From the sequence record MW879344.1: a stretch of DNA of 64,000 nucleotides; one strand, written 5' to 3'. The notes under the pieces were generated by a model that saw only the letters and a list, made by a program, of their open reading frames with translations, was not told where the DNA came from and ran no database searches. The first letter of the stretch is position 1. Each line of letters starts with the position of its first letter. Shown here one piece after another: positions 7,408-57,224 of this stretch. Made by a program: the position numbers and the translations under genes.

Positions 7408-7911
7408 TTAATCAGAAGTGTAGAAAATTCTAACGATTGGACATAGTGTAGAATTTGTAACACTACAATTGTAATGAGTATTTTGAATATACACTTTATT
7501 TGGATTTGGACTCATTGATACAAACATATCATATCCTGACGTTACACCTACTGTAGTTGAAACATCCACACTATTATTTGTAGTACTATCAGTGTATACG
7601 TAACATCCCAATGGTATAAATGAAACAATGTTTACATTAGTTTCGTTGGTAAAAATATCTTTCATTCTCATAAGCATACCTGCATTATTCGAACGAATTG
7701 TCAAATCATGATTATCTTGTTGGAAAACATGAAGTACTTTAACATCTTTTGATTTTAATATTAATGATGGTGGTGAATACAATCCATTATCATGATTTGA
7801 AATTGAGTTTCCAGAATCAGGAGAAATAATCACTGGCGGTAAATTTCCGATAAGTGAACCAGTGAATTCTACATCCCCATCAATTTTTATATCAGTTTTT
7901 ATATTATACAT
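7408..7911 (-). CDS. Small fibre/RBP-like protein with MYNIKTD N-terminal module
   Basis: N-terminus identical to that of the next gene; GGAG SD; ISPDSGNSISNHDNGLY fibre-type repeat. Confidence 0.6.
   Translation of the reverse strand: MYNIKTDIKIDGDVEFTGSLIGNLPPVIISPDSGNSISNHDNGLYSPPSLILKSKDVKVLHVFQQDNHDLTIRSNNAGMLMRMKDIFTNETNVNIVSFIPLGCYVYTDSTTNNSVDVSTTVGVTSGYDMFVSMSPNPNKVYIQNTHYNCSVTNSTLCPIVRIFYTSD
7865..7911. repeat. 47-bp exact direct repeat, copy 1 (copy 2 at 8430-8476)
   Basis: AATTCTACATCCCCATCAATTTTTATATCAGTTTTTATATTATACAT occurs at both sites and encodes MYNIKTDIKIDGDVEF on the - strand. Confidence 0.95.
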
Positions 7912-10926: not shown

Positions 10927-13900
10927 TTATGGACGTTGTGCAATGAACACATCATATTTAGAACCAATACCACAGTACACTACTTGACAGATGCTTACAG
11001 CGTTTGGATCAGTATTAACTTCACCACCAATGATTGCATAAGCAGTATCCCATGTTACAGTATGTCCACCAGTAGCATCTTGTGTTACATAGATGAACCA
11101 TGAACCTGCACCATTCACACCAGTAATTGGTTGAATTGAGGTATTTGCAGTTACGTTTACGTTATAAACGTTTGAAGTACCATCTGGAGTCCAAGTTGCA
11201 GTACTTACTGTTTCAGCAGCATGTTGAGCAACAAAGTATGTTCCAGTTTTGAATGATGTTGTTGTTAAGTTAGATAAATCAGCAGTTAAAGTACCAGTGA
11301 TTGTAATATTCTTAACAGTTGTATTACCAATAAAGTTACTTGTAGCATTAACAGTTAATGTATCTGCCGCTGCATCACCAATAACAGTGTTACCATTAGC
11401 GGTTAATGCACCAGTAATTGTAGCACTATTCAATGTAGCTAGACCAGAAGTACTCAAAGTGGTTGCAGATGTTGCAGCTAATGTTGTTGCACCAGTTACA
11501 CCTAATGTAGTGGTGATTGAAGCACTGTTTAGTGTTGCTAATCCTGAAGTACTTAGAGTACCAGTGATTGCAGTATTCCCAGCATTCAATCCAGCTAATG
11601 TACTTAAACCAGTTACACCTAATGTAGTCCCTACTGTTACACCAGCAGATGTAGTTACAGATTTGAAAGTTACATCAGAGTTAGTTTGATTCAATGTACC
11701 ATTAATTACACCAGTTACTGTAAAGTCACCATTAGTTACTACGTTACCGTTAACTTGTAGGTTGTTATTTGTACTTGATGGTGCACCAATGATTGCTGTT
11801 GCAGCAGTTAGAGAAGTTGCAGCGGTCAATGAACCAGCAGAACTAATATTTCCTGAAGCAGTTACGTTACGTGGTGAAATATCACGTGATGTTAAGTCAA
11901 TCTGTGCGTTTATAATACCAGTTACATCTAAATCACCAGTGATGATTGTATCACCAAATACATTTAGAACTTTATCAGTATCAGCAGTACCAGTACCAAC
12001 TTGTAATGCTTGAATCTTAGAAGTACCAGATCCATTAACAGTTAGAGTACCAGTCATTGCAGTATTACCAGTTACACCTAAAGTAGTTGTAATAGAGGCA
12101 CTATTCAATGTAGCTAGACCAGAAGTACTTAGAGTACCAGTGATTGCATGGTTACCAGAATTTACAGCAGCAAGTGTTGTAATACCAGTTACACCTAAAG
12201 TAGTTCCTACAGAAATTGCACCAGTTGTGGTTACTGAAGCAACATTCAAAGCCGCAGAACCTAAGTTTAATCCACCAGCAGGGGTGAATGAACCATTAAC
12301 AGTTACATCTCCAGCAAAAGTACTTGTAGCATTAACAGTTAAAGTATCAGAGCTTGCATTACCTAGAGTAATATTACCATTTGCAATTAATGCACCAGAT
12401 ACAGTAGCACTATTTAAAGTAGCTAACCCATTAGTAGTTAAAGTACTTAGAGTTGTTGCACCAGATACACCTAGAGTGGTAGTTACCGCAGCACTATTTA
12501 AAGTAGCTACACCAGAAGTACTTAGAGTACTTACAGAAGTATTTCCAGTTACACCTAATGTTCCGGCAATTGTTGTATTTCCAGAGATTTTTGGAGCACC
12601 TGTGATAACACCAGTAGTTAGAATTAAATCTGCACCAACGGTAGTTTTACCAGTACTTTCTAATGTTGCAGCTACTAGATTTGTTGCACTTAAATCAAAT
12701 GCACCATCAACAGTTAGGTCACCAACAACATGAGCATTACCAGAAGATGTTAATGATTTAACAGTTACATCAGCAGTACTTAAATCCACAGCACCAGGGG
12801 TTAGAGTACCAGATACTGATAAGTTACCAGTAATTGCAGTATTCTTAGCGATTGCTACAGTTGCATTCGTTGAAGTAATATTTCCGTTAAATGTTGCAGC
12901 ACCAGTTACTGTTGCAGCAGCGAAAGTCGCTGTACCTGTTCCAGTTAGTGTACCGATACTAGCGGTTGCAAGAGTACTTGTACCAGTAGCATTTAATGTA
13001 GTTATATCAGCAGTATTGATTGTTGCAGTAACACTTTGCAATACTGGTAATGTGTTTGTATTAACATTATCAGTAGCTGTGAATGTAAGAGCCGCAACAC
13101 TGGCTGAACTTAAACTAATTTGTCCACCAACAATTACGTCACCATCAAAAGTTGCTTGTTCTGTAGTATGAATAGATTTAGCTTCAATATCTACATCTGA
13201 TAGATCTAAACCACCAGCAAGAATTAATGTTCCACCAACTGTTAAATTACCAGAAGTAGTCACTGGAGAAGTAAAGTTTACTGCATTAGTACTATTTCCG
13301 ATACTTGAAGTTACTAAAGAACCCGCAGTAGCTACACCAGTTACTGTTGCAGATGCTAATGTTGCTAATCCAGAAGTACTTAATGTAGAAGCTGAAACAG
13401 CACCTAATGTACTTTGACCAGTTACGCCTAAAGTGGTTGAAACTGTAACTTTATTAGGAGCAATATCTAAACCATCAACATTTGCTTCAGCCGTTACACC
13501 AGTTGTTGTACCAGTTACTACAAGATCGTGAATAGTTGTTGTTCCTGTGCTTCCACCGAATGAAGTATTACCATCAACTGTTAATCTTCCACCAATAACT
13601 GCGTTATTTGTTACTGCGAATGCAGTATTTGGACCAGTTAATGATGCTCCAGCACCTAAGAAATTACCTGTCGCACTAACATCACCAGTAGAAGATATAG
13701 AACCGGAGTTTAGTGTTCCACTAATTACGGTATTTTTACCAATTGCAACATTTGTGTTAGTAGAAGTGATAGATCCGTTTACAGTTAGAGAACCAGTACT
13801 TTCTACGGTAGCACCCTTAATTGATGTTGTTGCATTTACAGATTGTGGTGCAATATCTAAACCATCAACATTTGCTTCAGCCGTTACACCAGTTGTTGTA

Positions 13901-28600: not shown

Positions 28601-31600
28601 ATAGAATGAATTTTTCAATAATGCTAATGCTTTACGAACGTTTATTTCAACATTTGTTAAAGATCCGTCTGCATTATATTGTTCATAACCATTATATAGT
28701 TGATTGTTCAATGCTACAGTACTGTTTTGACGAGCAACGGCTTGCCAAATCACCACATTACGTGATAGTGTCTTAGTATATAATGTCCAAACACCTTCTG
28801 CATCAGTAATTCGAATCACATCACCTTCTTGATAATTCTTTTGATTTGCCGATTCAAGACTAACTTCATCAGTATAAGTAGTGTTTTCACTATATCCAAT
28901 ATCATACCAGTCAGCAAGTGACCAATATTGAGTCATGTCAAGAGAAGTACCTAATGATTCGATATAATCTGATTGTTTGATCATTTTATGTTGACCTTCA
29001 CCACGATTTTCTAATGTAATGTATACTGCTGTTCCTCCAGTACTTGGAGAATTCATTAAGCGAATATAATTATTTTCATCGAAGTGAACAAAATATACTG
29101 AAGTAGAATTTAATGGAGAAGGTAGTGTTCCGTTAGTACTAACTAAAACTGCATCATTTTCTACAAACACATCAACACTAGGGTTGATTACCAATTCATT
29201 ATTATAGTTTAGTACTTTAAAACTAATTAGATTTGGATTTTGTTCTTCAGTTTTTACATTAAAAACATCATTCATCACTACAGTATTTGTAGTCACGTTT
29301 ACAGTCTTGTAAATTGCGTTCGCAGAGTCAACAAAGGTTCTACGTGCTTCAATTGGATCTCTGAACCAAGTTTCTCCTGGTAATATACCATTATCATTTG
29401 TTGGATAATGTAATTCTTTAATTTTACCGTTAGGTAAAACTTCTTGTGATTCTAAAGAATTCCATAACGAATCCCAAATGATAGGATTGAAATTGTAATC
29501 CATACCTTCTTTACATAATTGATACTGCTCGTGTTTAACCACTTCAGTAGCATTATTTTGATATGTAATAGAAAGAATACTCTTATCATCAGTAATTTCT
29601 TGTTGAAGTCCACTAACAATAAATGAATTTTGACTAATTGGTGCAAACCAAGGAGCATTCAATAATGATGGATCTTGAATTGTGCGAGACAATTCATTAC
29701 AAGGTTTGTTTCTATTTTTTACTTTAGGAACATAGATTGTATTCTTAACCCAAAAATAATATACAGTTTGATATGAATCAGTACTTTCGTCATATTCTTG
29801 GAATTCTGAATAGAAATCATCAATTGCTTGACCACTTGGAACCCATGCAGTATTATCTTTATTCAATTTAGCTTGACGTACACAATACTTATCCCATTCA
29901 TATGGAAGTACTGGAGAAGCTACCCATTCTAAAATATTAATTTCAGAATTTGGTAATAATTTACCCCAATTGTAACGTTTGTATTCATTTGTTGCTACTT
30001 CATCAACATTACCATCTGCATCATACAATGGACGTGTATAATCCATAAAGAATGCATTAGTTGTGTTCCACCATACTAAACCAACTTTTTCTGAACCCCA
30101 TGCTTGCATTTTTTCATCATCGCTGTTATACTTCGCTGGGTCAATAGTACTAATATAAGTAATATCAGACATGATAGAACCAGGAATAACACCATTGATT
30201 GGGTCAAATGTATTCATATACAATTCAGTTACATTATTTGTACTGTTGTAAGTTGTTGGTCTAACAAAAAGTGTACTCTCTGGAGCCGCATAAGAATATT
30301 TCTTATTAATATAAGAATCTTTAGCTGCATTAGTACTGAAACGATTTACATAACGGTATAATACTGGATTTCCTTCAGTGAAAGAAATTGTATTAGTAAC
30401 ATCAAGTGGAATAACAAAGCTCTTAGGATCTGAACCAGTTGTAAAGTACTGTGTCTCTGCTTTTAGTAAATCAGGCATATACTCTGATTCATCAACAAAG
30501 AAGAAGTAATCCCCATCATCCATGCCATGTGCTGAACTAAGTTCTAATGTACAATGGTTTCCTGGATAATTATCTTCATCACCAATTGGGGTGATTGAAT
30601 TTAAAGTAATACCAGTGTTTACAAGTTCAAAAATATTCCAATTATTGTCCATATCACGGAATACCCAAACAGATGTTGGTGTATCACCAGTGTTATTGAT
30701 ATAATTCAAACGATCAACATATGCAGTTGTGAAATCACGAGTACTGTAAGATACTTCGTCTAATGTTACTGGACCAATATCCGGTAAATTAATTCTTTCA
30801 CTTTTTCCATTACGCATTGGGAATGAAAATTGACCATTTGGTCTAGTAACCCAACGTGAATCAACACCTTGTGTACCATAAAAAATTATATTATTATTAT
30901 CAGTATCTGAAGTTGCATTTTCATCAAATGTAAACATTTGAGGCTCTTGTGCAAATTCATTATTGATTAATTGGAACTGTAAGTGTTTTTTACCATAAAT
31001 GTTACCGTACTCACCAATTTTAAATGCCCATTCTTGTAATGCTTTATAATTATCAGTATTATAAGATTTAGATACACGAAGAACTCTTTCAAATACTTGA
31101 TTAGTACCTTTATCACGAATGAAACCTTTATAAAAATCTACTTGTGATGTATCACTAGTAATCATTTGAGAAATATAATCACGAGTTTGGAATCCAATTA
31201 CATGACGAGCTAAGTTGCGTAATGTAACATTATCAACAGGATTGTCATTATCGTAATAATGTTGGAAATCAGTTACTAATTTTTCAAAATCTGGTAGTGT
31301 TCCTGCTTCTAGAATAATAAATCCTGGTGCCTCTAAGCGACCATTCCAAGAACCAGTAACATATCCGTACATTTTAATCATTTCATGTACTGAACCATAC
31401 TTAGGAATATATAAATCATTTCCAAAAATTGTTCTATCATCAAAAATTACAGCGTGCTCATATGCAACTACACTAACACGAATTAATGCCATACGCTTAT
31501 CAGAATCATCAACTAGACGAACACTGAACACGTTACCGATACGTGACGTATCAATTTCGTATGGACGAATACCATCGTTAGTATCATCAAGTAGTGACCA

Positions 31601-50497: not shown

Positions 50498-50525
50498 AAA
50501 AAGGAGCCATTAGGCTCCTTTTTTT
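50498..50525. terminator. Bidirectional terminator
   Basis: AAAAAGGAGCC-atta-GGCTCCTTTTTTT; the EndoVII stop codon lies in the loop. Confidence 0.85.
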
Positions 50526-50992
50526 ATTTGTGTCATATCTAAATCACCAGATTTAATCAACTTTCGGGCTTGATTAGCTCTTTTAGCTGTGTTAGACTCT
50601 GGTACTACATTAAATGATTCTAAAATAGAACATTGTTGAGCAGATGGCAATGATTTGAACTTGCGAACATCAACCGTGAGTGCTGTGTGGTGTATATGCA
50701 TGTTTGAATAGTCTTGTTCATAATAATCTGCTAGATTTCTTAAAATTGTTGGTAAATCGGTATCTGTTAGGTGTTTAATGTATCTATCGTAAGCATTTTG
50801 TACTTTACCTTCAAATGAGTTAACAGTTCTATCTAGTACTGCTCTACATTCTTGTTCACCTTTATGATTATGGTCTAGTACTGGATCTTTTACCTTCTCT
50901 TTTATAATAGGATCTAAACCTTTTTGACTTTTAAGTAAATCTGCCCTATACTTGGCAGCCTCTTTTGAATTTTTTAATCTTTGTCGTTTCAT
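50510..50992 (-). CDS. Endonuclease VII-like Holliday-junction resolvase (gp49-like) lacking Zn cysteines
   Basis: VLDHNH...CRAVLDRTVNSFEG aligns with T4 HLDHDH...VRGLLCNLCNAAEG. Confidence 0.75.
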   Translation of the reverse strand: MKRQRLKNSKEAAKYRADLLKSQKGLDPIIKEKVKDPVLDHNHKGEQECRAVLDRTVNSFEGKVQNAYDRYIKHLTDTDLPTILRNLADYYEQDYSNMHIHHTALTVDVRKFKSLPSAQQCSILESFNVVPESNTAKRANQARKLIKSGDLDMTQIKKGA

Positions 50993-51034
50993 ATATACCC
51001 CTAAAGTCTTTATATAATTGTATTTAACGAAATA

Positions 51035-51063
51035 TGGAACGAATTAAAAATATTTGGTATAAT
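51035..51063 (+). promoter_or_regulatory. TG(G/A)AAC-N17-TATAAT promoter firing into an ORF-free interval
   Basis: TGGAAC 51035-51040, 17-nt spacer, TGg-TATAAT 51058-51063. Confidence 0.7.
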
Positions 51064-51068
51064 AAGAT

Positions 51069-51790
51069 AGTAAAACCCTGTTTGGCAATACATGGATGTG
51101 TGTTGACAGTTAGTAAAACCCTGATCTAGTCGAAAAGTAGACAGCAGATGAGAAGTTCAAACAGTTCGTTGTGCAAAAGAAACCCGTTAGAAGTACGTGC
51201 AGTCAATCAAATGCGACATAAGACACCGAGTTCACGGCAATGCGGCACATTAAAGAAGTACACTAGGCAAATAGTACTTCCTCGATAGACATTTAAGGAT
51301 CGCACCTTACGAAGTAGCTAAGGGAGTTTTTCTGGATATGAAAATTGCGATTGATTTATATACAATATAGATCCGTCAAAAATTCAGAAGAATAAGTATT
51401 AAGATTGATTGTATAGTCTTAATATTAGTGTGGTAAGCCCACGACCGTTGCACATGACCGTAATAGAGAGAAACAGAGCAACCCGCTTTCGTTCTAGAGA
51501 TAGAAATTTACGATACAATTAAATCCGACGACTATCATCGTCAGAACAATATTCAGTACCTTTATTGGTACTTTTTTATTGTCTTCATTCCCCTGTGGGG
51601 GGATGATAAAGTCCTCTACAAATCTCGTCAGTATAACAGTATTAAACGTAGTAAGTATTGAATTGAGTTTGCTTCAGTACAAACGAAGTGAAGTACAGAA
51701 CAAACGAAAATTCTTTGACATTCGAAGAATGGCAAATTAAACAGTATAAAATATTCTTAAATTCAAGGTACAAAAAAACCAGCAACTAGT
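51069..51790 (+). ncRNA. Candidate large structured non-coding RNA, family unassigned
   Basis: Own promoter, no ORF of 60 aa or more on either strand, at least 12 hairpins with G-U pairs on + and a GAGA tetraloop; candidate ends at ~51577 or ~51797. Confidence 0.6.
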
Positions 51791-51797
51791 GCTGGTT
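51772..51797. terminator. Terminator for the - strand gp26/gp51 unit, possibly bidirectional
   Basis: A7-AACCAGCA-actag-TGCTGGTT. Confidence 0.75.
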
Positions 51798-51975
51798 ATG
51801 ATTTTTTGTTTTCACGTTTAATCTTTTTGTTATATTGCTTCACCATCAAATCTTTGTCATTCACTGGCATATTCAAAAGCATTTCATATGAAGTATTAGG
51901 TATATGAACTGCAACTTCCATTAAAGAATTTTTAATTTCTTCGCAGTTGAAACGCAATTCAGATATTTCCTTCAT
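51796..51975 (-). CDS. gp51-like small hub-assembly protein (59 aa from ATG 51975, or the -1 frameshift extension of the upstream gene)
   Basis: TAATG overlap with the upstream stop; the frame is also open back through the slippery site. Confidence 0.55.
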   Translation of the reverse strand: MKEISELRFNCEEIKNSLMEVAVHIPNTSYEMLLNMPVNDKDLMVKQYNKKIKRENKKS

Positions 51976-52850
51976 TACTTCTTCTGGTTCTGAGATGAGA
52001 AGCCTTGAACGAAAAAACTGCTTGGATCGAATTGAAGATTTTCCAAAACCCATTCATGACCACATTCAGAACAACCTACGTCCATTTCATGTGATACCCC
52101 AATATTATTAATATAATCTGCTTTTTCACGAATTTGTTTTAAAATAAAAGCAGGTTGTGTTCCTACCCAATCAGCAATAAATTCGTCTTCTTTAACAATC
52201 ACACCATCAACTGTTTCAATATAATCAATATTGGCTACAGTCATGTCAAAACTTAGCTGAGTCATTTTTTCAAATACATCAGTAAATTCTTTCATTTTTT
52301 CTTCGTCAGTCATTTCTACATTTTCTAGTAGCTGTGCTCTCTTTTGCTCTTTAAACATTCTAAGACCAAATTCTGAATGTTCTTTCCATGTGTGAGGTTT
52401 AAATTTAATAATTAACCCACCAATATCTTCAAGTATTAGTGTTGGTTGTTCTTCAAGTAATTCAGCACTGTCTAGTAAGTACTGTAAATTACGTTCAAAG
52501 GCACCATGATGACCACATTCAGGACAATTTACTTCAATTTGATATTCTGTTTCTTTCGTTGCTAATTTTATGCCAATTAGCAATAATTCAACATCTGGTA
52601 CAAACAAGTCACGTGCATTTGAAATATTCGGTACACAGTTTTGAATAACATTCACTACAGCTTCACCATTCATTAGTGCATCTGGATTGTTAAACATCAA
52701 TTCATCACGTGCTGAACGTGCACAAATACCACATTCAACAGTATCGCTAACTAACACACCTTTTGGATATTTAATTACATCATTACTTACTAATTTAGTA
52801 TATAAAGTTTCTACTTTTGTATACTTTGATAAAGGGTTCATTTGATTCAT
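51975..52850 (-). CDS. Baseplate hub assembly protein, T4 gp26-like
   Basis: MNPLSKY, ARDELMFNNPDALMNGEA and two CxxC motifs (CPECG, CSECG); GGAG SD before 52850. Confidence 0.7.
   Translation of the reverse strand: MNQMNPLSKYTKVETLYTKLVSNDVIKYPKGVLVSDTVECGICARSARDELMFNNPDALMNGEAVVNVIQNCVPNISNARDLFVPDVELLLIGIKLATKETEYQIEVNCPECGHHGAFERNLQYLLDSAELLEEQPTLILEDIGGLIIKFKPHTWKEHSEFGLRMFKEQKRAQLLENVEMTDEEKMKEFTDVFEKMTQLSFDMTVANIDYIETVDGVIVKEDEFIADWVGTQPAFILKQIREKADYINNIGVSHEMDVGCSECGHEWVLENLQFDPSSFFVQGFSSQNQKK
52011..52017 (-). other. Putative -1 ribosomal frameshift heptamer U_UUU_UUC
   Basis: In frame (agT TTT TTC, Phe-Phe) 12 codons before the gp26-like stop; the -1 frame runs 71 codons. Confidence 0.5.
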
Positions 52851-52914
52851 ACTGACTCCATAATAAATACGTCTATACAATATTTTGTATAAAGTTATTT
52901 ATGAGGAAAATTAC

Positions 52915-56828: not shown

Positions 56829-56883
56829 GGTTCATAAATAATATTGATTCGTTCAGTGAACGATTAGAATATAAGGATAGGTT

Positions 56884-57117
56884 ATGTTAGACGAAATTTT
56901 TGAAGCTAAAGATGACTCTATGTACGACCCTGAAGATGATCAGACAGTATATAAGTTGACTGACACTCGGAAACCTAAATTGACATTACAAATTCTCAAC
57001 AACTTGAGAAAGTACAGAGAATTTAAAAAGAATGAAGCTGCTAAGCGTGACGCAGTGGTTGCGATAGTATATGCACAACCTTCTGGTGATGATCAAGCTG
57101 GTGGTGGAATGATGTAA
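56884..57117 (+). CDS. Small conserved head-module protein
   Basis: 77 aa between portal and core genes; own TAAATA at 56835-56840. Confidence 0.6.
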   Translation: MLDEIFEAKDDSMYDPEDDQTVYKLTDTRKPKLTLQILNNLRKYREFKKNEAAKRDAVVAIVYAQPSGDDQAGGGMM

Positions 57118-57224
57118 TTATTACGAAAAGTGCCATTTTTAAGCTTTTTTGAAAATGGTATTTTTCTTACTAATAAATAATGACATACCAAAATAAATTT
57201 TTGTATATCTGTTTGGAGGATATA

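Follow-up and report, generated by a model that had tools for sequence, protein, structure and literature searches.

The question raised by this locus is what lies between the EndoVII and baseplate hub genes of Erwinia phage pEa_SNUABM_49, an Eneladusvirus and RaK2-like jumbo phage with a T4-related genome of 358 kb (MW879344.1), whose sequence at this point shares 99.7% identity with that of Serratia phage BF. In the window (the whole 64 kb stretch of DNA analysed, to whose positions the coordinates below refer) the gap runs from 50993 to 51795 (803 nt), and the original prediction had singled it out as the only long interval without an open reading frame (ORF); our scan agreed, as nowhere else do 250 nt or more pass without an ORF of 60 or more amino acids on one strand or the other. 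EndoVII (50510-50992) lies to the left of the gap, and to its right come a small ORF and the gene for the gp26-like baseplate hub (51796-52880), all on the minus strand. The first positions of the gap (50993-51030) are the minus-strand leader of the EndoVII gene and fall outside the RNA proposed here; they hold a Shine-Dalgarno sequence (SD), AGGGG, as well as a conserved box resembling a late promoter, TAAATAC (51026 to 51020), which reads GTATTTA on the plus strand and is kept in that form in the orthologous gaps. The late motif reported for phage CBB is ATAAATA (PMC5259590).

The prediction had been that a large structured non-coding RNA (ncRNA) is transcribed across the gap from its own promoter (TGGAAC-N17-TATAAT), with neither an SD nor an ORF after it. 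We find this promoter at 51035-51063 of the plus strand (predicted start at about 51069-51071), composed of TGGAAC at the -35 position, a 17 nt spacer and an extended -10 sequence, TGgTATAAT. Searching the window for TG[GA][GA]AC-N16-18-TATAAT gave five matches on the plus strand and none on the minus strand, compared with 0.4 in shuffled sequences, and the other four promoters of this class each had an SD and ATG within approximately 20-50 nt while the RNA promoter had not, in keeping with the prediction. There is no plus-strand ORF between 51064 and the terminator, the genes beyond it being on the minus strand, and minus-strand promoter-like matches in the gap were no more frequent than in shuffles. 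This promoter class was named the "divergent RpoD-like promoter" in the CBB genome paper, where it carries TGAAACG at -35 and is found mostly ahead of DNA-synthesis genes (PMC5259590). TGnTATAAT precedes all copies of the RNA described below; the phage copies also have the TGRRAC box, which is missing from the copies in bacterial islands and in phage XaC1.

Behind the promoter comes an optional 5' leader (51069-51117), 43 nt long in the window, which is a partial tandem duplication of the 5' end of the RNA core (a 16-nt sequence at 51065-80 is repeated at 51108-23) together with a hairpin, H0 (51086-93/51098-105), that covaries in the alignment. The island and XaC1 copies have no leader and there the promoter abuts the core. 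At the far end is an intrinsic terminator reading in both directions (AACCAGCA-loop-TGCTGGTT between an A run and a T run, 51777-51809), which is kept in all orthologous gaps and which probably closes the RNA on the plus strand and the hub operon on the minus strand. The RNA at this locus converges on minus-strand genes and stops at the terminator, an arrangement kept across genera. With both transcript ends being predictions, the full-length RNA would probably be about 735 nt (from about 51070 to about 51805), of which about 515 nt (51118-51631) are conserved core, and the length of the RNA is put at about 560-740 nt.

Every RaK2-like genus has homologues of the RNA, and others turned up in jumbo phages known from metagenomes and in Enterobacterales, including E. 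coli, where they lie on small integrative islands. The EndoVII-hub gap itself, 770-840 nt long and without annotation, is present in Eneladusvirus, Mimasvirus, Asteriusvirus and the 7t3/Munch-like Salmonella phages, is also conserved at the DNA level in Kaldavass and Hallingskeid, and has the same EndoVII-hub synteny in the distant metagenomic phage L108. DNA identity was 83-100% within Eneladusvirus for a 2 kb query with the flanking genes (approximately 90-100% for the gap alone), 72-78% for Mimasvirus (CBB, GAP32 and XbC2) and approximately 68% for Asteriusvirus (121Q, PBECO4 and G17).

The gap copy is not alone in its genome. At least four copies were located in pEa_SNUABM_49, all on the plus strand and all without annotation (BLAST reports five places): type D at approximately 29.9 kb of the phage record, type A (the window copy, in the EndoVII-hub gap) at 175 kb, type C at 259.3 kb upstream of an ADP-ribosylglycohydrolase gene, and type B at 336.4 kb. 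A nhmmer profile found approximately 110 full-length copies among the fetched loci, with 2-3 per contig of 350-370 kb, and the invariant 20-mer AGAAACAGRRYAACCCGCTT (51469) likewise occurs 2-3 times per jumbo genome in IMG/VR, and also in metagenomes. A tree showed that the paralogue types predate the genera, and RaK2 itself and some metagenomic phages of higher GC content, one of which shares the hub synteny, have more divergent subfamilies. Each RaK2-like jumbo-phage genome carries four to five paralogues of this RNA family, which have diverged from one another.

Orthologues, paralogues and island copies (42 sequences) were aligned (alignment A1) and RNAalifold gave 60 base pairs, with compensatory changes in 37 of them; a separate covariation scan contributed three pseudoknots, bringing the combined structure to 87 pairs. 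Across the 42 sequences 95.4% of the cells in this structure were standard pairs, compared to 38-43% when the partners were slid by 1-3 columns, and double-sided changes were seen in 60 of the 87 pairs (629 cells) compared to 22-27 pairs (64-78 cells) in the slid controls; none of 500 shuffles matched any of five pairing measures. Conservation and covariation in RaK2-, GAP32- and PBECO4-like phages, to which the original prediction had looked for a check, were thus both found. Because the 87-pair structure had been derived on A1 itself, the 3' domain was transferred to a second set, A3, which adds 16 more divergent sequences and partly offsets this circularity: 97.3% of the cells remained paired (39 sequences including the divergent subfamilies, over the conserved 3' core at 51394-51545), double changes occurred in 34 of 45 pairs and again 0 of 500 shuffles did as well.

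The imperfect pairs had been read earlier as G-U pairs pointing to a plus-strand RNA. The alignment bears this out, since the paired columns hold 244 G:U cells compared to 30 A:C cells, and the strand of the RNA is therefore the plus strand. The minimum folding energy of the core had a z-score of -3.47 on the plus strand, where 0 of 100 shuffles folded as well, and a less convincing -1.80 on the minus strand, so that the suggested comparison of folding energy with shuffled controls also came out in favour of the RNA. No conserved ORF was present; each of the six frames has 4-18 stops, and a 46-amino acid ORF from the sole conserved ATG shrinks to 7 codons in Asteriusvirus. For a sequence that is multi-copy and lies beside integrases in islands one might consider the decayed remains of a protein gene, a repeat or mobile element at the level of DNA, or mere spacer, but the absence of a conserved frame, the compensatory changes and tolerance of G:U pairs, which amount to selection at the RNA level, and the synteny across genera bring any such reading close to refutation. 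A transposon or MITE was rejected for the same locus, as terminal inverted repeats are absent and the locus is stably syntenic. With a promoter before all copies, strong covariation that includes the pseudoknots, and no conserved ORF or Rfam family (see below), the proposal of a plus-strand gene for a large structured ncRNA with its own promoter in the gap can be taken as demonstrated by comparative sequence analysis.

The predicted RNA is built of two domains with approximately 17 helices, three pseudoknots and approximately 100 invariant, mostly unpaired nucleotides. In the 5' domain (51118-51325) helices 1-6 are paired in 95-100% of cells and 20 of 28 pairs show double changes. H1 (51121-23 and 51126-31 with 51140-47) has an invariant loop, GAAAAGUA, and is followed by GAUGAG; H2 (51152-54/51165-67) is supported by covariation, and two long-range helices come next, H3 (UGUGC at 51170-74 with GCACA at 51245-49) and H4 (51184-87/51234-37, enclosing a variable insert). 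H3, plus the pseudoknot PKc described below, takes the place of the long-range GTGCAA/TTGCAC pairing that had been suggested. H5 (51255-59/51276-80) is followed in order by an invariant GAUAGA and H6, while a 3-bp pseudoknot, PKa (51240-42/51290-92), also covaries. For H6, in our judgement by eye, covariation prefers UAAGG/CCUUA (51294-98/51306-10) to the hairpin at 51305-51323 proposed originally, and leaves the invariant UAAGGGAG that comes after it unpaired. We also tried pairing the H1 loop GAAAAGUA with CUUUC and rejected this, because the loop is invariant whereas CUUUC covaries with GAGAG.

A variable peripheral domain (51326-51393), closed by H7 (51326-28/51391-93, included in the pair count as helix 7), separates this from the conserved 3' core and is missing from the Asteriusvirus copies. 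It contains at 51359-77 a recurrent module, UACAAUAUAGAUCCGUC, which in other members turns up at other peripheral positions, for example inside H12. The 3' core opens with H8 (51395-406/51415-26, 12 bp), whose loop (51408-14) pairs with 51513-19 to form the pseudoknot PKb, and nine distinct loop sequences were seen, each matched by its partner. H9 (51430-32/51440-42) covaries and is followed by a compact pseudoknot of PKc (GUUGC/GCAAC, 51447-51/51478-82), H10 (CGUAA/UUACG, 51459-63/51508-12) and H11 (CUUUC/GAGAG, 51466-70/51486-90), of which H11 encloses the invariant AGAAACAG..AACCCGCUU around which the knot is arranged. The crossing of GTTGC/GCAAC with CGTAA/TTACG had been foreseen, and these helices are paired in 100% (PKc) and 99.5% (H10) of cells. 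H10 and PKb both draw their 3' sides from a single unbroken 12-nt strand, 51508-19. Covariation also supports H12 (51493-95/51502-04) and H13 (51527-31/51538-42).

Beyond the core lies an optional terminator-like hairpin with a U run, H14 (51555-51578), found by a terminator scan; 5 of its 6 pairs covary (as helix 16 of the count) and it is missing in many paralogues (types B and D). The alignments then place at 51586-51631 a C-run/G-run hairpin, H15 (51589-93/51598-602), and a conserved tail, CAAAUCUCGUCAG (51619-31); the G run of H15 is an invariant GGGGG at 51598-602, next to the C run and with AT-rich DNA beyond it. An AT-rich 3' extension (51632-51776) has further hairpins in alignment A2, including hairpin b (UUUGACAUUC-GAA-GAAUGGCAAA, 51714-51737) with three compensatory changes, which extends a hairpin first placed at 51710-51730. 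Compensatory changes in relatives were likewise seen for the other hairpins read from the sequence at 51086-51105, 51255-51280, 51395-51426 (12 bp), 51430-51442, 51492-51505, 51527-51542, 51555-51572 (followed by the U run) and 51585-51606; those at 51353-51373 and 51667-51705 are plausible parts of the fold.

One feature of the 3' half is a repeat that covaries by identity and not by complementarity. The loop and 3' arm of H13 (51532-44, here called X) recur as 12-13 nt in the conserved tail (51619-31, X'). The first letters of X and X' are C/C in 34 sequences, G/G in 6 and A/A in 2, a U/C position is identical between the two in 42 of 42 sequences, and the variants CGUCAG, CGUCAAG, CGACAA, CGAAG and CUUCAAG are always the same at X and X'. 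A mutual-information scan found only this identity covariation and no complementary third partner of X and X'. This suggests that the two segments may be used in alternative or intermolecular pairing (strand swapping), or may be two sites for one ligand.

Is this a known RNA? All 4227 Rfam 15 families were searched with cmscan at E ≤10 for the window copy, E ≤1 for three paralogues or island copies and E ≤5 for four divergent members, and no family matched inside any of these copies (the window copy and seven others), which agrees with an uncharacterised RNA as predicted. ARAGORN found no tRNA or tmRNA gene in the whole 64 kb window, nor was there an Rfam tmRNA match, and literature searches found no published description of the RNA. 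Group I and II introns were rejected because the RNA has its own promoter directly upstream and is flanked by genes of opposite orientation, and because neither RF00028 nor RF00029 matched. The guide RNAs of mobile elements (omega RNA, IS110 bridge RNA and retron or DRT ncRNA) were rejected in that no effector adjoins: the neighbours of the phage copies are EndoVII, hub, gp401/402 and gp348/349, with no IscB/TnpB, DEDD recombinase or reverse transcriptase, and those in the islands (integrase, CI-like repressor and Ner-like protein) include no guide-RNA effector and have an integrase of varying type.

RNase P RNA bears a superficial likeness, both RNAs being large and pseudoknotted. Its conserved regions CR-V and CR-I are ACAGAACCCGGCUUA and GGAAAGU, which ACAGA..ACCCGCUU and GAAAAGU respectively recall, but the order of elements differs, the CR-V-like segment pairs elsewhere, with CUUUC/GAGAG (H11) and GCAAC/GUUGC (PKc) instead of a P4-like helix with the GAAAAGUA loop, and RF00010, RF00011 and RF00373 gave no match. 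Membership of ROOL (RF03087), GOLLD (RF01998), OLE, raiA or HEARO was rejected in the same way, no covariance model matching. The comparison with ROOL and GOLLD made in the original prediction was nevertheless apt in size and complexity, as these RNAs too are 500-800 nt long, have numerous helices and pseudoknots, keep their unpaired nucleotides highly conserved, and occur on phages and mobile elements with no protein gene associated. It fails as a claim of membership, there being no match in sequence or structure to either model, and the setting also differs: Enterobacterales and T4-related jumbo phages instead of Firmicutes and similar hosts, four to five paralogues per genome, and a position away from tRNA genes, of which the 64 kb window has none. 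On its sequence and predicted fold, this large pseudoknotted ncRNA represents a new family, one that belongs with the large ornate ncRNAs known from phages and mobile elements. Large, highly structured ncRNAs are rare, and RNase P RNA, group I and II introns, tmRNA, OLE, ROOL and GOLLD each opened new biology; the family described here equals these in complexity and has unusually clear covariation support.

The copies outside phages bear on what the RNA might do. An E. coli copy, 80% identical and found in two genomes, sits between integrase and hypothetical genes in an island of approximately 10 kb inserted next to ffs, which also carries the PADLOC candidate defence genes PDC-M45 and PDC-S16. 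Further island copies were found in Citrobacter, Enterobacter, Serratia, Silvania and Buttiauxella, where an integrase (of large serine or of tyrosine type) is followed by the RNA, a CI-like S24 repressor and a Ner-like HTH protein, in that order. In the tree the island copies form at least two clades nested among phage copies, and exchange must therefore have occurred more than once. Comparison of approximately 460 kb of phage DNA found no protein neighbour common to the phage loci and the islands, the sole match being an ADP-ribosylglycohydrolase homologue 5 kb away in one MAG.

We give about even chances to the RNA being a folded particle that acts in trans, alone or with a conserved host factor. 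Such an RNA would be made from early or middle promoters and would act as a folded molecule instead of as the leader of a neighbouring gene; we infer this because there is no gene to regulate at the locus, the neighbourhoods of the paralogues are unrelated and protein neighbours are not common to them. Since phage loci and islands have no protein neighbour in common, any partner would be a conserved host component, or there would be none (an RNA-only or self-assembling particle). The presence of copies in islands of lysogeny or defence type suggests a part in phage-host conflict, and the likely role would be in this or in takeover of the cell, early or midway through infection. A leader or cis-regulatory element for downstream genes, riboswitch-like or an attenuator, is by comparison very improbable, and would apply only to copies other than that in the window. 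Position in the 5' UTR of a same-strand gene does occur for some paralogues: same-strand ORFs follow copies B and C (gp401, and the ADP-ribosylglycohydrolase gp349, whose place behind the RNA recurs in other genera), same-strand genes also come after the copies of relatives (a methyltransferase in fHe-Yen9-04, and XaC1_103) and after the island copies, so that leader functions are possible there, and the optional H14 is a terminator-like element within the RNA. At the window locus, however, no plus-strand gene follows, only a terminator and convergent genes as in other genera, and the downstream genes vary between copies and no Rfam cis-regulatory family matched.

The main rival, which we think unlikely, is that each copy is a replication origin at which the structured RNA would form a persistent R-loop and prime DNA synthesis, as do ColE1 RNA II or the middle-promoter transcripts of T4 oriF and oriG, and which would give the islands a Rep-independent origin. 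The four to five copies are dispersed over a T4-related genome of 358 kb, all on one strand, and their promoter class is that ahead of DNA-synthesis genes in CBB (PMC5259590), with which origins would fit equally well. The islands have no visible rep gene, and priming by host factors alone would agree with the missing common protein. ColE1 RNA II is a transcript of approximately 550 nt that needs only host factors and has an important G-rich element near its 3' part, and G clusters favour R-loops; the jumbo-phage RNA is near it in size, is structured and has its own promoter (a strong promoter and a function dependent on folding being features of RNA II), and its invariant GGGGG lies by a C run near the 3' end with AT-rich sequence beyond. 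It is far more elaborate, pseudoknotted and conserved in sequence than RNA II, though, with several copies in a lytic phage genome, and in reading the gap sequence we noticed no DnaA-box-like motif, iterons or unit like antisense RNA I. Likeness to T4 oriF/uvsY and oriG/34 lies in the nearby T4-related replication genes (gp46/47, EndoVII), a phage-specific promoter class with a non-canonical -35, and several copies per genome, but here it is the RNA structure that is conserved, and we know of no conserved structured RNA at the T4 origins; the promoter class fits and the downstream DNA is AT-rich, yet that DNA encodes covarying hairpins. With three pseudoknots, modular insertions at the periphery and approximately 100 unpaired nucleotides that do not vary, the RNA goes far beyond what known primer RNAs need, the covarying structure extends well beyond the G run, and the islands resemble integrated islands with defence or lysogeny modules and not replicons. 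A skew change specific to the site was also not found, which is weak evidence.

That the RNA works entirely without protein, as a new ribozyme or as a homo- or hetero-oligomeric assembly like ROOL and GOLLD, also seems rather improbable to us. ROOL, GOLLD and OLE are reported to form homo-oligomers (PMC12286853). The size, density of pseudoknots, invariant junction nucleotides and carriage by phages and mobile elements resemble those of ribozymes and ornate RNAs, the identity covariation of X and X' is the expected product of strand swapping between molecules, and no partner protein was found, but against this no cleavage or ligation site or processing junction was evident and models of ribozymes and ornate RNAs in Rfam 15 were unmatched. 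Either of these last two readings, if correct, could make the RNA a new functional class, whether a protein-independent replication or primer module captured by islands for copying during infection, or a ribozyme or self-assembling particle whose five orthogonal paralogues form a hetero-oligomeric machine in phage-host conflict; we put this forward tentatively, as a doubtful possibility.

The RNA is carried by cultivable phages, among them the E. coli phages 121Q, PBECO4 and G17 as well as Erwinia and Serratia phages, and this, along with the several paralogues and the exchange with islands of defence type, makes it directly open to experiment. Some of the "dark" sequence in jumbo-phage genomes, which has no annotation, could be accounted for by the family. 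Automatic annotation has sometimes placed ORFs of 30-65 amino acids, which are not conserved, in the EndoVII-hub gap of relatives.

An ADP-ribosylglycohydrolase gene always lies 3' of paralogue C, one of the diverged copy types of the RNA element within a single phage genome, on the same strand and across genera (loci L056, L040 and L029), as exemplified by gp349 of Serratia phage BF (L056 3283-4212). A homologue of this protein with 28% identity is also encoded 5 kb from the RNA copy of an Enterobacteriaceae MAG (L062).

Further genes lie near the RNA in relatives. The difference between fHe-Yen9-04 and the near-identical Yersinia phage fHe-Yen9-03 (L002) is an adenine methyltransferase gene, which in fHe-Yen9-04 is inserted on the + strand after the RNA but before its terminator (L003 1855-2661). 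One RNA copy of XaC1 (L014) likewise precedes a Dam-type methyltransferase gene by two genes. Salmonella phage Munch carries an inserted + strand ORF of 319 aa between EndoVII and the RNA promoter (L011 1121-2077), which is missing in its close relative 7t3. Upstream of its RNA copy (7436-7648), a divergent metagenomic phage (L135) has two protein genes, at about 3.4-4.2 kb and 0.3-1.4 kb. One of the proteins looks, by motif reading alone, like a Thg1-type tRNA-His guanylyltransferase, and the other, of 369 aa, is a possible ligase of RNA or DNA; this gene neighbourhood could hint at an RNA-repair context.

The element was also found in E. coli (NZ_AP027515.1 and NZ_CM130020.1), on an integrative island of approximately 10 kb adjoining ffs, the SRP RNA gene (L020/L021 7959-18303). 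Here the RNA lies within an unannotated gap of 1.4 kb, of which some 700 nt are 3' of the RNA (12548-13258), and the island further contains an integrase split by IS3, a DUF4326 gene, a serine recombinase, DUF488 and dual-OB genes matching the PADLOC candidate defence system PDC-M45, and a DUF2188 gene matching a further candidate, PDC-S16.

Within the window, the convergent gp46-like and EndoVII genes are separated by a terminator (AAAAAGGAGCC-loop-GGCTCCTTTTT, 50498-50523) that is both strong and bidirectional, and it explains all of the weak Rfam "sRNA" matches in the region (STnc50 and others). A conserved TAAATAC box on the - strand (51020-51026) precedes the EndoVII start by approximately 28 nt; it resembles a T4-type late promoter and also the ATAAATA motif reported for structural genes of CBB. 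The RNA profile gave no match in 56829-57179 (351 nt), the second-longest interval of the window to lack ORFs of 80 aa or more.

At the 5' end of the window copy, a 16-nt direct repeat (AGATAGTAAAACCCTG / AGTTAGTAAAACCCTG) occupies 51065-51080 and 51108-51123; the leader of this copy is the 5' end of the core partly duplicated in tandem, with a new hairpin between both repeats. Type D copies (L022, L024, L036 and L041, and 29865-30405 of MW879344.1) have a strong GC-rich hairpin and U run directly after the promoter and before the core (for example GGACAGCAC...GUGUUGUCCUUUUUU), which resembles either an attenuator at the 5' end or a stem-loop with a protective role.
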